A stretch of DNA of 64,000 bases. It comes from Octopus sinensis. Taxonomy: Eukaryota. Of this stretch, positions 765 to 64,000 are shown in pieces; position 1 is the first letter of the stretch; each line of letters starts with the position of its first letter. The stretch is from the NCBI RefSeq assembly GCF_006345805.1, contig NW_021834418.1:1-64000 (forward strand). The letters are read 5' to 3'. Position numbers and translations under genes: made by a program. The notes beneath the pieces were generated by a model. It had not been told where the DNA came from. It saw only the letters and a list, made by a program, of their open reading frames with translations, and searched no databases.

Positions 765-908
765 ATGGATTTCGCACAACAGTTCAGGAATATTTCGCAG
801 CGTTATTCCATTTCTTCTCTCATAACTTTTGGGGTTCTTCTCGTTCTGACGATCGTCAATCTTCATCAAGATTCAAGAATAGGAAAAATGGAAGAGAAAT
901 CAAAAACG
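765..908 (+). CDS. Copy A exon 1: N-terminal tail plus signal-anchor helix
   Basis: ATG in cagaATGG context; 144 nt = MDFAQQFRNISQRYSISSLITFGVLLVLTIVNLHQDSRIGKMEEKSKT; donor gtaagt at 909. Confidence 0.8.
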
Positions 909-1189
909 GTAAGTCATGGATTTTGTGTTAACATATGTATGTCTTTATGTATTTATATATGTATGTATGCGTGCATGTATGTATGCATCTACGTATGTAT
1001 ATATGAATATATGGATGTATGTACATACCGATGGATGGATGGATGGATGTAAGGATGTATGCATGAACCATGTACATATGTTCCTATACAGCACACACAC
1101 ACACACGTACGATCCATCACACACGTATACACATAAAATAACACAGGCGCACACACCTAAACATACATACACACATACACACACACACA

Positions 1190-1245
1190 CATATATATAT
1201 ATATATATATATATATATATATATATATATATAATATATATATAT
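1190..1245. repeat. (TA)n microsatellite flanking the Penelope-like foldback
   Basis: Near-pure TA run ending at the left arm of the element. Confidence 0.95.
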
Positions 1246-2680
1246 ATACAATATGTTACATTACTCGGTAGTCAAGATAAAACTCTGAGTTTCAGATGCC
1301 GAAGTGGAAATCCACAACACCATCTCTTCGGTTATCTGGCTATTTGAAAACGTTATGAAAAAATACCGTTAAAAATGAAGGGAAATTACTCTGTTATAAC
1401 TCTGCTTTGCCTGCGTACTTATACATCGCTCGCATTTTTCGTCATAAAAATTATATAAAAATACATAAAAATATATAAAAATATATAAAAATATATAAAA
1501 TCTTCTTGGGACATAACACAGAAAGCATGTTCTATCCGTTTTCTTTAGGGGACCAAAAACATAACAGAAATTTAGTCACATGTGGGCATGATCCGAAAAG
1601 CTCTGTCCTTGTATTTAGACATGTGGTAGGGTCTAAGCTGCTTTTCCAGATAAGCCATCTCTCCATGTCGCATAAACCGCACCTTCCGCTGCCGTTAGTA
1701 TAGGGCTTACATCTGGCCAAAATCTTCCATTGTATGTTATAATCGACACCTTTATCTCTTAAAGACCAAATATGATTGGATAATTGTGTCGCTTTTCTTT
1801 TGTTCCAGTGCCTAAAGCTCAAAGTGTGGTTATTGAACCTGGCCTTGAAATTACCCTCTGTCAGGCCCACGTATTTCTTCGTCGAAACGGTGTCTTTAGT
1901 GGTTATAGAGTTTACGGTAGCTTCATATATGATGGTCTTGGACATGCAAGCTCCATTTAGCGGGCACAATTCTTTATTCCTGCATGAACAGCTGTTTTCT
2001 TCTTGTGTTTTTTGTATGTTATGATTGATTATGTTTTTAAAATTGGTAGTTGAACTAAAACTAATTTTTAAATTGTGTCTATTAAAGAGTTTCCTATAAG
2101 CATGGTTAACTGGAAAATGTCTATCTATCAGTGCTAGGAAATATTTACCTATATTGAAGGCCACCTCGGGTGAGTAAGGGGGCGTAAACCAGATGACCTT
2201 CCTATTTCTATTATTCCTTTTCCTTATTGTTGGGCTGGTGATAGGTGTATATTTTATTTTTTCGCTAAAACCACTATCTTTTAAAGCTTTATTATAAACT
2301 GGGGCAACGCTATTGAAGATGTCCTCATTAGATGAGAGGCTAGAAATCCTCTTACTAATATTTTTAACTAAATTTTTGAATACTATAGGGGGATGGCATG
2401 AACCTACATTAATATAACTTAGTCTATCATTGGGCTTCCTATAAGGCTTATAAATATTATTATTAAGATCTAAGGAAACGTCTAAGAAATTGACAACCGT
2501 CAGGTTAGTGTCTATAGTTATACTAAGTCCGAAGTGTTTCATTAACTGGATAATATCCTTCCTAAAACGATCTTGTGCTGGTCCATTTGTATTAGCTGTT
2601 AAGGCGAGGGCATCATCTTTGTAGATGGCGAAATGTACGTTAGGGAATGTCCTACCGAAGGTATCTAGGAGAAGGTATCT
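1246..2680 (-). mobile_element. 5'-truncated Penelope-like element (RT C-terminal part + GIY-YIG endonuclease), possibly Naiad clade
   Basis: Minus ORF ending at 1532: RT motif IYKDDAL, VNFLDV, YKPYRKPND, then CSC-x5-CPLNGAC, IIYEATV...KYVGLTEGNFKARF (GIY-YIG) and CGLC. Clade assignment is from motif recollection only. Confidence 0.9.
1275..1337 (-). ncRNA. Mirror copy of the hammerhead fold in the left arm
   Basis: Reverse complement of 3929-3991. Confidence 0.65.
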
Positions 2681-4090
2681 TGGACCAGCACAAGATCGTT
2701 TTAGGAAGGATATTATCCAGTTAATGAAACACTTCGGACTTAGTATAACTATAGACACTAACCTGACGGTTGTCAATTTCTTAGACGTTTCCTTAGATCT
2801 TAATAATAATATTTATAAGCCTTATAGGAAGCCCAATGATAGACTAAGTTATATTAATGTAGGTTCATGCCATCCCCCTATAGTATTCAAAAATTTAGTT
2901 AAAAATATTAGTAAGAGGATTTCTAGCCTCTCATCTAATGAGGACATCTTCAATAGCGTTGCCCCAGTTTATAATAAAGCTTTAAAAGATAGTGGTTTTA
3001 GCGAAAAAATAAAATATACACCTATCACCAGCCCAACAATAAGGAAAAGGAATAATAGAAATAGGAAGGTCATCTGGTTTACGCCCCCTTACTCACCCGA
3101 GGTGGCCTTCAATATAGGTAAATATTTCCTAGCACTGATAGATAGACATTTTCCAGTTAACCATGCTTATAGGAAACTCTTTAATAGACACAATTTAAAA
3201 ATTAGTTTTAGTTCAACTACCAATTTTAAAAACATAATCAATCATAACATACAAAAAACACAAGAAGAAAACAGCTGTTCATGCAGGAATAAAGAATTGT
3301 GCCCGCTAAATGGAGCTTGCATGTCCAAGACCATCATATATGAAGCTACCGTAAACTCTATAACCACTAAAGACACCGTTTCGACGAAGAAATACGTGGG
3401 CCTGACAGAGGGTAATTTCAAGGCCAGGTTCAATAACCACACTTTGAGCTTTAGGCACTGGAACAAAAGAAAAGCGACACAATTATCCAATCATATTTGG
3501 TCTTTAAGAGATAAAGGTGTCGATTATAACATACAATGGAAGATTTTGGCCAGATGTAAGCCCTATACTAACGGCAGCGGAAGGTGCGGTTTATGCGACA
3601 TGGAGAGATGGCTTATCTGGAAAAGCAGCTTAGACCCTACCACATGTCTAAATACAAGGACAGAGCTTTTCGGATCATGCCCACATGTGACTAAATTTCT
3701 GTTATGTTTTTGGTCCCCTAAAGAAAACGGATAGAACATGCTTTCTGTGTTATGTCCCAAGAAGATTTTATATATTTTTATATATTTTTATATATTTTTA
3801 TGTATTTTTATATAATTTTCATGACGAAAAATGCGAGCGATGTATAAGTACGCAGGCAAAGCAGAGTTATAACAGAGTAATTTCCCTTCATTTTTAACGG
3901 TATTTTTTCATAACGTTTTCAAATAGCCAGATAACCGAAGAGATGGTGTTGTGGATTTCCACTTCGGCATCTGAAACTCAGAGTTTTATCTTGACTACCG
4001 AGTAATGTAACATATTGTATAGATAAATTTCCTCTGTTTACATAATATTGAGGTCTCTTTCTTTCTTTTGTTATCTTACCGTTTTATCAA
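2681..4090 (+). mobile_element. Inverted copy (pseudo-LTR) of the same Penelope-like element, with a ~70-bp extra 3' tail
   Basis: 2681-4020 is the reverse complement of 1246-2585 (paired coordinates sum to 5266; identical translations). 4021-4090 has no counterpart on the left arm and is followed by (TA)n. Confidence 0.9.
3929..3991 (+). ncRNA. Minimal type-I hammerhead ribozyme fold in the Penelope 3' region
   Basis: Stem I AGATAA/TTATCT; core CCGAAGA (U4C variant of CUGANGA); stem II GATG..CATC; T-GAAA; palindromic stem III ACTC-A-GAGT; predicted GUU site at 3985. Confidence 0.65.
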
Positions 4091-4156
4091 TATATATATA
4101 TATTATATATATATATATATATATATAATATATATATATATATATAATATATATAT

Positions 4157-62226: not shown

Positions 62227-62514
62227 GGATCTTTCAACCCTATTATCTCCCCTAATTTCGCTCTCGCGTCTCATGTTTGATCTTTGACTTCTGGCTGAAA
62301 TCAGATCGCCATGTTGATTCGTTAGTTACTGCACGCATTTTTTTCTCTCCTTCTTTCTGTGTTTTTTTTCTCTGTGTATCTTTCTGTTGAAGAGCGTAGG
62401 CTCGAAACGTTAAAGACTTGTTTTATTTATATTTCCTGAGCGCCATACTAATACAATTGTTTGTTTGTTTTCCACCTGCCTTCGTCTTTTGTCTATTTTC
62501 ATAAAGCTTCCCGT
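62227..62514 (+). mobile_element. Solo Penelope-type terminal fragment in (TA)n, carrying a hammerhead fold
   Basis: Flanked by TA runs; absent from copies A and B at this site; contains the fold at 62379-62416. Confidence 0.6.
62379..62416 (+). ncRNA. Minimal type-I hammerhead fold (38 nt)
   Basis: TCTTT-CTGTTGA-A-GAGC-GTAG-GCTC-GAAA-C-GT-T-AAAGA: stem I 5 bp, stem II 4 bp, palindromic ACGT stem III, A6U core variant. Confidence 0.65.
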
Positions 62515-62566
62515 TATATATATATATATATATATATATATATATATATATATATATATATATATA

Positions 62567-62988
62567 GGCGCAGGAGTGGCTATGTCGTAAGTAGCTTGCT
62601 AACCAACCACATGGTTCCGGGTTCAGTCCCACTGCGTGGCACCTTGGGCAAGTGTCTTCTACTATAGCCCCGGGCCGACCAATGCCTTGTGAGTGGATTT
62701 GGTAGACGGAAACTGAAAGAAGCCTGTCGTATATATGTATATATATGTGTATATGTATGTGTGTGTTTTGTTGTGTCTGTGTTGGTCCCCCTAGCATTGC
62801 TTGACAACCGATGCTGGTGTTTTACGTCCCCGTCACCTAGCGGTTCGGCAAAAGAGACCGATAGAATAAGTACTAGGCTTACAAAGAATAAGTCCCGGGG
62901 TCGATTTGCTTGACTAAAGGCGGTGCTCCAGCATGGCCGCAGTCAAATTACTGAAACAAATAAAAGAGTAAAAGGAAAAAAGTAAAGA
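62567..62988 (+). mobile_element. tRNA-derived SINE, family 1
   Basis: Full head-to-tail match to 22389-22796. Confidence 0.88.
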
Positions 62989-63353
62989 TTATATATATAT
63001 ATATATATATATATATATATATATACTCACATCCAAGTTCAACTACAAAACAAACATCCGTTCTTAAGGGAGACAAATACACATTCTGATATTCTGAGAT
63101 TAATCTCTGAATTCGTTGACATCAACGTCAACAACAGGCTCAATAGACAAATGACTAATTTTCTTCGTTTAAATTTATTCTTTGCGAATCATTTACTTCT
63201 TTCATTCTGATTCTCATTCATTCACTCATTCTTTTTCTCTTAAATTCTAAATTTCTTTCCTCTCTCTCAATTTCTTCCAAACCAACAACATCCTTTGTAT
63301 AGGATTCAAGAATTCTTTCTTTTAAACTAAATTGTTTCATTTTAATTTCACAG

Positions 63354-63428
63354 AACCCGGTCTCGGATCATTGTATACCCGGTGGGGCAGAAATACTTGT
63401 CCTCCTTATTCAAACCTTGTCTATGACG
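63354..63428 (+). CDS. Copy D exon 3 (75 nt, intact)
   Basis: cag|KPGLGSLYTRWGRNTCPPYSNLVYD-G|gttagt; defines the in-frame length. Confidence 0.8.
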
Positions 63429-64000
63429 GTTAGTATACTCTGTATTTCTATCCTCTCTTTCTCACACGCACACGCACGCACACTCAAGCAAATCATGTGA
63501 TATATCACGTTTGAAACGACACCTATAGACCCTATAGAGACTGCACAATACTGCTTACTCCTTTGTAGGTATTTGGTCAAATCAGAATTTTAAATGTTGT
63601 CTAATATGGACCAGGTGAAAAGGATGTTGTCTAACCTCAGAATATAGATATCTCTACGTTTAATTATAGATAGGGACTAGACTGGAATCCAGTTAGCGAT
63701 CAAGGACTCCTGGCTGACTTGTATGGAGTGTAGATATCAAATACCGAGGCTGCTAACTGGTGATCAAGTGTACTGGATACGGATGGTGGTATTGTACGTG
63801 AGTGACCAGAGCTGAAAGTTGCCACTTGTCTATCATTAACTAGAGTGTCTATTGATTGTAGTTATAGACTAAATTGAACAAGGTCTAATTAGAATTGATG
63901 AATGAATGTATATGGTTAATGAAATGAACGCAGAATGTACAATGTGGACTGGACAGACCACACACTATAACTAATGGACAAAGCTAACTTAGGGTCGTAT

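Follow-up and report, generated by a model that had tools for sequence, protein, structure and literature searches.

A tandem array of octopod "short-chain collagen C4-like" genes with predicted membrane-anchored products that lack a collagen helix

The first 64,000 nucleotides of contig NW_021834418.1 of the Octopus sinensis assembly GCF_006345805.1 (forward strand; this whole stretch is referred to as the window) contain a tandem array of similar genes. The array raises the question of what kind of protein it encodes, whether this protein is a collagen and whether the genes are intact. The original prediction, made from the letters of the window alone, described four copies of a four-exon gene for a collagen-less, membrane-anchored protein with a Cys-rich domain related to the C-terminal domain of spongin short-chain collagens (SSCC family) and to the NC1 domain of collagen IV. 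Taken as a whole, the window is best explained as part of the octopod cluster of "short-chain collagen C4-like" genes, which we regard as rather likely. Each unit would encode, or once have encoded, a protein of about 256 amino acids (aa) in four parts: a 16-aa cytoplasmic tail, a single hydrophobic helix that would act as signal anchor and orient the protein as type II, a charged stalk (about 34 aa, with many K, D and E residues) and a 190-aa extracellular head of the SSCC type with ten conserved cysteines. A collagen helix would not be part of this protein.

The window is AT-rich (39% G+C), and self-alignment revealed four units (u0 to u3) that are arranged head-to-tail on the + strand and are 86-93% identical over exons and introns alike. 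As ruler for the exon mapping we used the intact O. vulgaris gene P0005 (CAI9737331.1, locus L001), whose exons of 144, 52, 75 and 500 nt encode 256 aa. Exon 1 encodes the tail and the hydrophobic helix, exon 2 the stalk, exon 3 the segment PGLGSLYTRWGR... and exon 4 the remaining Cys-rich domain. These four exons and their phases are common to the annotated octopod paralogs and the window copies, which share 81-100% aa identity per exon, and all acceptor AG, donor GT and ATG are preserved in the window units. All motifs quoted in the original prediction were found on the + strand. Its four copies of a four-exon gene correspond to the four units; exon 4 of u3, however, lies past the end of the window, and u0 carries extra exons.

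A phmmer-based search returned 490 relatives, with E-values down to 1e-46 within the first 120 listed. Many of them are named "short-chain collagen C4" or "short-chain collagen C4-like" by NCBI or UniRef; no sponge sequence was looked at directly for the family assignment. The best relatives are found in O. sinensis, O. vulgaris, O. bimaculoides and Argonauta, are 253-264 aa long, have the same tail, helix and stalk and are named "short-chain collagen C4-like" or "uncharacterized"; the top hits, from the three Octopus species, have 253-257 aa and share the peptides of exons 1 and 2. One of them, O. bimaculoides P0121 (XP_014780686.1), aligns with 87% identity over all 256 aa without gaps. The relatives and their names support the proposed membership in the SSCC family, and the label that had been expected from automated annotation, "short-chain collagen C4-like", is exactly the one in use. 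The family is not unrecognised by databases, as had been implied, since it is already catalogued in octopod annotation.

Intact orthologs or paralogs are present in three other octopod genomes. In each Octopus assembly the clusters are located on one large chromosome-scale contig, and each genome has more than 20 annotated gene models in clusters (O. vulgaris: accessions CAI9737320-345; O. sinensis: dozens of XP_0363665xx-668xx models), in agreement with the proposed tandem arrangement. Positions 8-17 kb of the window are 99.0-99.7% identical to O. sinensis CM016876.1 (locus L002), and identity to the collinear O. vulgaris locus L005 is approximately 95-97%; beyond 22 kb the order of the units is unlike that in both the O. 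sinensis and O. vulgaris assemblies. A protein search found no annotated protein that matches any window exon 4 with at least 97% identity, which suggests that the window copies are unannotated or that the window comes from another assembly. Pairwise synonymous divergence (dS) between copies lies at 0.1-0.2, whether or not the copies compared are from the same species. Compared with about 0.7% mismatches between orthologs this implies that most duplications predate the split of O. sinensis and O. vulgaris, and the idea of a family that is expanding locally was not borne out.

Runs of four or more Gly-X-Y triplets are absent from all six frames of the 64-kb window. A Pfam scan detected the collagen model PF01391 in none of the octopod members and in eight of 50 diverse relatives. 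The absence of the triple helix was thus correctly recognised, but it is not a special feature of the octopod genes, being the common state among the best 120 of the 490 relatives: only nine of these 120 contain at least five Gly-X-Y triplets, and a crude hydropathy screen found an anchor-like hydrophobic segment in 34 of them, including unionid and venerid bivalves. Judged from its deduced sequence, the product is related to the SSCC family through its head domain, yet is not a collagen. Collagen-less, anchor-bearing forms are common in databases, and the window genes add a further architecture to a known family, one already represented in public annotation. A literature search found no paper on the octopod cluster or on membrane-anchored spongin-like proteins.

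As sequenced, none of the four window copies is open, each having its own 1-bp insertions or deletions (indels), and an open reading frame was obtained only from the consensus of the window copies. The original prediction was largely right about architecture and annotation but had implied intact copies; its spliced product is not encoded by any of them unless the frameshifts are ignored. In u0, exon 1 (765..908, +; ATG, 16-aa tail, hydrophobic helix and start of the stalk) is open over its 144 nt and has 96% aa identity to exon 1 of O. vulgaris P0143 (CAI9737332.1), and exon 2 (14734..14785, +; NRFISKKSLDDKPDDTP, 52 nt) is intact. Exon 3 (20915..20988, +; PG.GSLYTRWGRTTCPTNSSLVYDG) has 74 nt instead of the expected 75 (length shift -1) owing to a 1-bp deletion at 20924; its orthologs in O. 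sinensis (L002 15121-15195) and O. vulgaris have 75 nt. Exon 4 (23393..23890, +), which encodes the remaining Cys-rich domain up to the TGA, is 498 nt long instead of 500 (-2), with frameshifts at 23745, inside a (TG)n run, and at 23796-23799. A putative AATAAA signal is located about 60 nt 3′ of the u0 stop codon (23952..23957, +), and a counterpart was found in u2 at 50676.

The other three units are interrupted at different places. In u1, exon 1 (27323..27466, +) is open with 144 nt; exon 2 (30248..30298, +; 51 nt, shift -1) contains three 1-bp indels and exon 3 (33877..33950, +; 74 nt, shift -1) a 1-bp deletion at 33935. Exon 4 of u1 (35749..36244, +; 496 nt, shift -4) falls within an indel-rich patch at 28-38 kb and contains approximately 13 indel events and a TAT>TAG stop (GTE*QLEY). 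In u2, exon 1 (41915..42056, +) is 142 nt long (-2) with 1-bp deletions at 42009 and 42017, exon 2 (46225..46276, +) is intact and the same as the O. vulgaris reference exon, and exon 3 (48402..48475, +; 74 nt, shift -1) has a 1-bp deletion at 48473; exon 4 (50113..50614, +; 502 nt) contains several 1-bp indels and a 5-nt duplication right before the stop codon. In u3, exon 1 (53590..53732, +; 143 nt) has five 1-bp indels versus one substitution, while exon 2 (59542..59593, +) and exon 3 (63354..63428, +; 75 nt) are intact. Exact exon lengths were found in all eight complete or partial copies of loci L001 and L002 (including seven copies of exon 4), and the annotated octopod paralogs P0005, P0143 and P0121 are open, unlike the window copies.

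Most of these frameshifts are probably errors of the assembly consensus, and most of the genes are then probably intact in the animal. Measured against whichever O. vulgaris or O. sinensis sequence matches best, the density of 1-bp indels reaches 1.6% in the intervals 28-38 kb and 50-54 kb versus 0.2-0.5% elsewhere, with a substitution divergence of 5-7% throughout, and the 1-bp indels are biased 3:1 to deletion. The two patches look like locally poor assembly consensus. The patchiness of the indel excess and its independence of substitution divergence make assembly error the likelier source. The ratio of gaps to mismatches is 0.39 within the window, versus 0.20 for L002 against itself and 0.15 for L001 against L002. 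In the orthologous segment at 6-17 kb, 0.74% mismatches and 0.22% 1-bp indels were counted against O. sinensis; natural divergence would not give so high an indel to mismatch ratio (about 0.3), which points to consensus error rather than decay. The five indels for a single substitution in exon 1 of u3, the exact exon lengths of the copies in L001 and L002 and the open consensus of the window copies point the same way.

The frameshifts might instead be real and the four copies true pseudogenes in a decaying stretch of a birth-and-death family, which is possible, though we think it doubtful. That every copy is broken would be expected then, and several observations weigh against an origin in the assembly. 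The stop codon in u1 is of the substitution type, and the ratio of nonsynonymous to synonymous divergence (dN/dS), which is high between copies overall (0.3-0.9), reaches 0.8 for u1, the highest value in the comparisons with u0. Exon identity between units is not above intron identity. Some frameshifts of u0 and u2 lie outside the indel-rich patches; they occur at about the intronic background rate of 1-bp indels, as neutral decay predicts. For exons 1 and 2, dN/dS is 0.76 among the window copies versus 0.10 among intact copies, although the counts are small. Half of the 1-bp events (17 of 34) lie within runs of at least two identical nucleotides and the rest outside homopolymers. In O. vulgaris, too, the truncated or exon-skipping models P0065, P0043, P0022 and P0029 read the same wrong frame, and some members of the cluster may therefore really be decaying.

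Against pseudogenes in the window speaks that splice sites and start codons are all in place, that only a single stop codon occurs in approximately 850 frame-corrected codons and that the dN/dS of the domain core matches that of intact copies (0.47 in frame-corrected window copies, 0.41 in intact ones). In addition, indel to substitution ratios of 1:1 to 5:1 in places, and a sevenfold ratio in two patches compared with neighbouring DNA of equal divergence, are unlike neutral decay, and exon 3 of u0 is intact in its orthologs in both species. Two potential tests did not discriminate: homopolymer context is not diagnostic for the origin of the indels, given the even split of the events, and dN/dS is not decisive between pseudogene and error because intact paralogs already reach 0.3-0.8. 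We favour consensus errors for most of the frameshifts, and the stretch is unsuited to pseudogene calling before it has been checked against reads.

The N-terminal signal-anchor-like helix of the original prediction is present in the deduced protein and conserved in octopod orthologs. Hydropathy analysis (Kyte-Doolittle, 19 residues) gave a maximum of 2.67 for residues 15-33, with R8 and R13 ahead of them, and in the full-length AlphaFold model (predicted local distance difference test, pLDDT, 85) residues 16-50 are predicted to be helical. The C-terminal domain is rich in disulfides, which implies that this part is lumenal. The hydrophobic segment could also be a cleaved signal peptide, which counts against the membrane anchor; the product would then simply be secreted, as a soluble component of the extracellular matrix or of a secretion, in the manner of other spongin-related proteins. 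Many amphioxus, annelid and brachiopod relatives start with a short classical signal peptide, and octopus ink, a secretion, contained a peptide of a paralog. We nevertheless consider this unlikely. The hydrophobic stretch comprises 17-19 residues, starts at residue 15-17 after a tail with two Arg and runs into the predicted continuous helix up to residue 50, and is therefore longer and located later than a typical signal peptide. Tail, helix and stalk of O. bimaculoides P0121 share 65 of 67 residues with O. vulgaris, which would be unusual for a discarded leader, and tail and helix have the lowest dN/dS (0.10). The detection in ink fits shedding or cell debris as well. A type II membrane anchor remains the preferred interpretation of the hydrophobic segment.

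The relation of the head to the NC1 domain is more difficult to demonstrate. The head matched no Pfam model at E ≤1, and in 50 members of the family no model was found at E ≤0.1 except PF01391, in eight non-octopod sequences. The NC1 model PF01413 was not matched even among these 50 members (E ≤0.1), and neither phmmer nor hmmsearch with a 50-sequence profile found NC1 chains in the PDB. PF01413 was likewise not found in spongins (PMC12749355). In contrast to these searches, structure comparison returned NC1: the top 35 Foldseek PDB matches of a head-only AlphaFold model (pLDDT 92.6; predicted template modelling score, pTM, 0.87) and the top 16 of the full-length model are all collagen IV NC1. 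The matches have E-values of 1e-4 to 6e-2 and probabilities up to 0.99, but template modelling (TM) scores of only 0.19-0.28 and a root-mean-square deviation (rmsd) of approximately 18 Å; the next unrelated fold follows at E ≥0.3.

Profile comparison with hhalign aligned subdomain 1 of the head with subdomain 2 at 96.4% and E 1.3e-9, which indicates that the two halves are homologous and represent an internal duplication, as in NC1. Aligned to human alpha1(IV) NC1 (1LI1_A), the head yielded a local motif of 40 columns with 67% probability. With an alignment of seven NC1 sequences from PDB chains, the local mode gave the 40-column motif at 40% probability and the global mode gave no alignment. 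The motif common to both, CAVC...CP.GW...GY, is located at the start of subdomain 2 in the head and in NC1. In 50 diverse members the cysteines C81, C109, C160, C163, C180, C207, C234, C239 and C250 are invariant and C253 is conserved in at least 90%. These ten cysteines, all of which the frame-corrected window copies retain, agree with the published pattern of seven cysteines shared between spongin and collagen IV plus three that are spongin-specific (PMC5395295). None of the sequences contains an HSQ motif.

It is plausible that the head is a remote, internally duplicated relative of collagen IV NC1, which is consistent with the literature but only weakly demonstrable. The proposed NC1 homology is thus less well supported than the rest of the interpretation: the top Foldseek matches are to NC1 only, but TM scores are low, HMMER and Pfam found nothing and hhalign is restricted to 40 columns. 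The poor rigid-body fit and the failure of sequence methods beyond the short motif, together with the independent negative result for spongins, would also be expected if the head were not homologous to NC1 and the resemblance were due to a short motif and convergence of small disulfide-rich beta folds, but this is very improbable, since NC1 chains alone lead the Foldseek results of two independent models with an approximately 1000-fold E-value gap to the next fold, both domains are internally duplicated, the aligned motif has the same place in both and the number of cysteines is as in the published alignment.

Compared with known systems, the octopod product is closest to the SSCC family, whose founder is short-chain collagen C4 of Ephydatia muelleri (Exposito 1991 and Aouacheria 2006, as cited in PMC5395295). 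Both have a C-terminal domain of approximately 190 aa with ten conserved cysteines and without HSQ; the octopod orthologs carry the name of this family at NCBI and UniRef, and the distribution among invertebrates is wide. Unlike SSCC, the octopod product has no Gly-X-Y domain at all, and where SSCC proteins have a signal peptide and a short triple helix it has a predicted signal-anchor helix followed by a short, charged stalk. With collagen IV NC1 (PF01413; PDB 1LI1, 1M3D, 5NAX and 8TYS) the octopod head shares two homologous subdomains and the CAVC...CP.GW...GY motif, and NC1 domains are its only significant structural neighbours. In contrast to NC1, the head is not matched by the Pfam model, is about 35 residues shorter, has ten cysteines instead of twelve, is not joined to a triple helix and superposes poorly on a global scale. 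Collagen IV NC1 forms trimers and head-to-head hexamers, with sulfilimine or chloride-dependent stabilisation.

With regard to architecture only, the predicted product resembles the ligands of the TNF superfamily, ectodysplasin and the membrane collagens XIII, XVII, XXIII and XXV, which combine a short cytoplasmic tail and one signal-anchor helix with a stalk and, at the C-terminus, a globular beta-rich head. The fold of the octopod head is unrelated to theirs. Members of these groups are often shed from the stalk, and the membrane collagens contain long Gly-X-Y regions.

The extra exons of u0 are a candidate exon, exA (16584..16648, +; 65 nt, ..SLLDLLCRPETVNIVLPSKT), and a second copy of exon 2 (18141..18192, +; NRVISKKSLDDKPDDTP). 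The 3′ end of exA, its donor site and the intron that follows duplicate the end of exon 1, so exA marks the junction of a partial-unit duplication, which lies inside exon 1. To judge by these copied segments, the duplication is the result of unequal crossing-over. Its structure is common to the O. vulgaris P0143 gene (L005), with which u0 is collinear over approximately 22 kb, and to O. sinensis (L002). In the annotated P0143, exA and the second exon 2 are spliced in, which results in a 294-aa form, and exA is also used in several O. sinensis annotation models. One O. sinensis model, XP_036366807.1 (P0006), spans 40 kb (L002 10001-50234), joins exon 3 of one unit to an exon 4 two units downstream and begins in non-anchor "alternative" exons, one of which is found in the window at 15769-15852 with 100% identity; P0006 is probably a chimeric gene model.

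Fragments of retrotransposons fill the introns, together with long (TG)n or (TGTA)n tracts. An inverted pair with nearly the same open reading frame of approximately 370-414 aa and no Pfam match is located at 1532-2776 (-) and 2625-3734 (+). In the collinear O. vulgaris L005 the surrounding segment (1245-4090) is missing; it is therefore probably a recent insertion of a mobile element into intron 1 of u0. Introns also contain remains of non-LTR (long terminal repeat) retrotransposons at 5094-13388 (-) and 56489-57967 (-). These include fragments of RVT_1 (6758-7171 and 9779-10234) and, at 56489-57967 (-), an intact reverse-transcriptase frame of 492 aa (PF00078, E 1.9e-33), of which a 96.8%-identical copy is present elsewhere in L002. 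The long (TG)n or (TGTA)n tracts are located at 25587-26904, 38175-40087, 41099-41494 and 52268-53173; the (TG)n tracts stop approximately 420 bp before the ATG in u1, u2 and u3, which places them at the unit boundaries, and may have been hot spots of the unequal crossing-over by which the array arose. Intron 3 of each unit contains a repeat of about 380 bp (22393-22763, 32927-33293 and 62571-62941), which also occurs, in opposite orientation, at 1-379, just upstream of the u0 promoter region.

Across 51 octopod paralogs the variation is concentrated in four loops (P0005 residues 96-101, 120-128, 136-144 and 194-199), and the rest of the scaffold is nearly invariant. The loops are encoded in exon 4 (in u0 at approximately 23405-23425, 23480-23555 and 23700-23720 of the window) and coincide with non-regular secondary structure and lower pLDDT in the AlphaFold model. 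In the loops the proportions of nonsynonymous and of synonymous differences (pN and pS) each exceed those elsewhere about threefold, and dN/dS is 0.85 versus 0.43. This pattern fits relaxed or diversifying selection, with the scaffold subject to gene conversion; positive selection in the loops was not demonstrated, as dN/dS is 0.85 and pS is raised too.

Two observations bear indirectly on expression. The peptide DDGGAVLYFVQSVCGSLPCPPYVK reported from the octopus ink proteome (PMC10142993) is contained in paralog P0010. A 1.1-kb mRNA-like contig (L003) encodes a 63%-identical relative with helix, stalk and head and contains neither an intron nor Gly-X-Y. Logan contigs for P0166 and P0167 were rejected as transcripts: they consist of genomic exon 4 plus intron and hence provide no evidence of expression.

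By analogy with collagen IV, the head may oligomerise as NC1 does, and the protein may act at the cell surface or, after cleavage within the stalk, in secretions; this proposal is tentative. Shedding, if any, would occur from the K-rich stalk, and the protein would then mediate binding at the cell surface or in a secretion, with the four hypervariable loops forming a diversified binding surface. It is conceivable, albeit a long shot, that the cluster encodes a set of diversified type II-anchored, NC1-like oligomeric ligands or receptors in which the loops set the specificity of each paralog, and thus a lineage-specific recognition repertoire.

Spongin-related proteins are found in most invertebrate phyla, and the literature treats them as short collagens. 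In octopods, and according to the crude hydropathy screen also in some bivalves, the head occurs without a triple helix and on a predicted membrane anchor, which makes the label "short-chain collagen" misleading for the octopod genes. This suggests that the NC1-like module has an independent life as a cell-surface or secreted binding unit, and the octopod cluster is a tractable system for asking what such a module binds. If the cluster indeed encodes a recognition repertoire, this might serve immune, self/non-self or chemotactile recognition, and it would have been built from the oldest assembly module of the basement membrane, with the collagen helix discarded.

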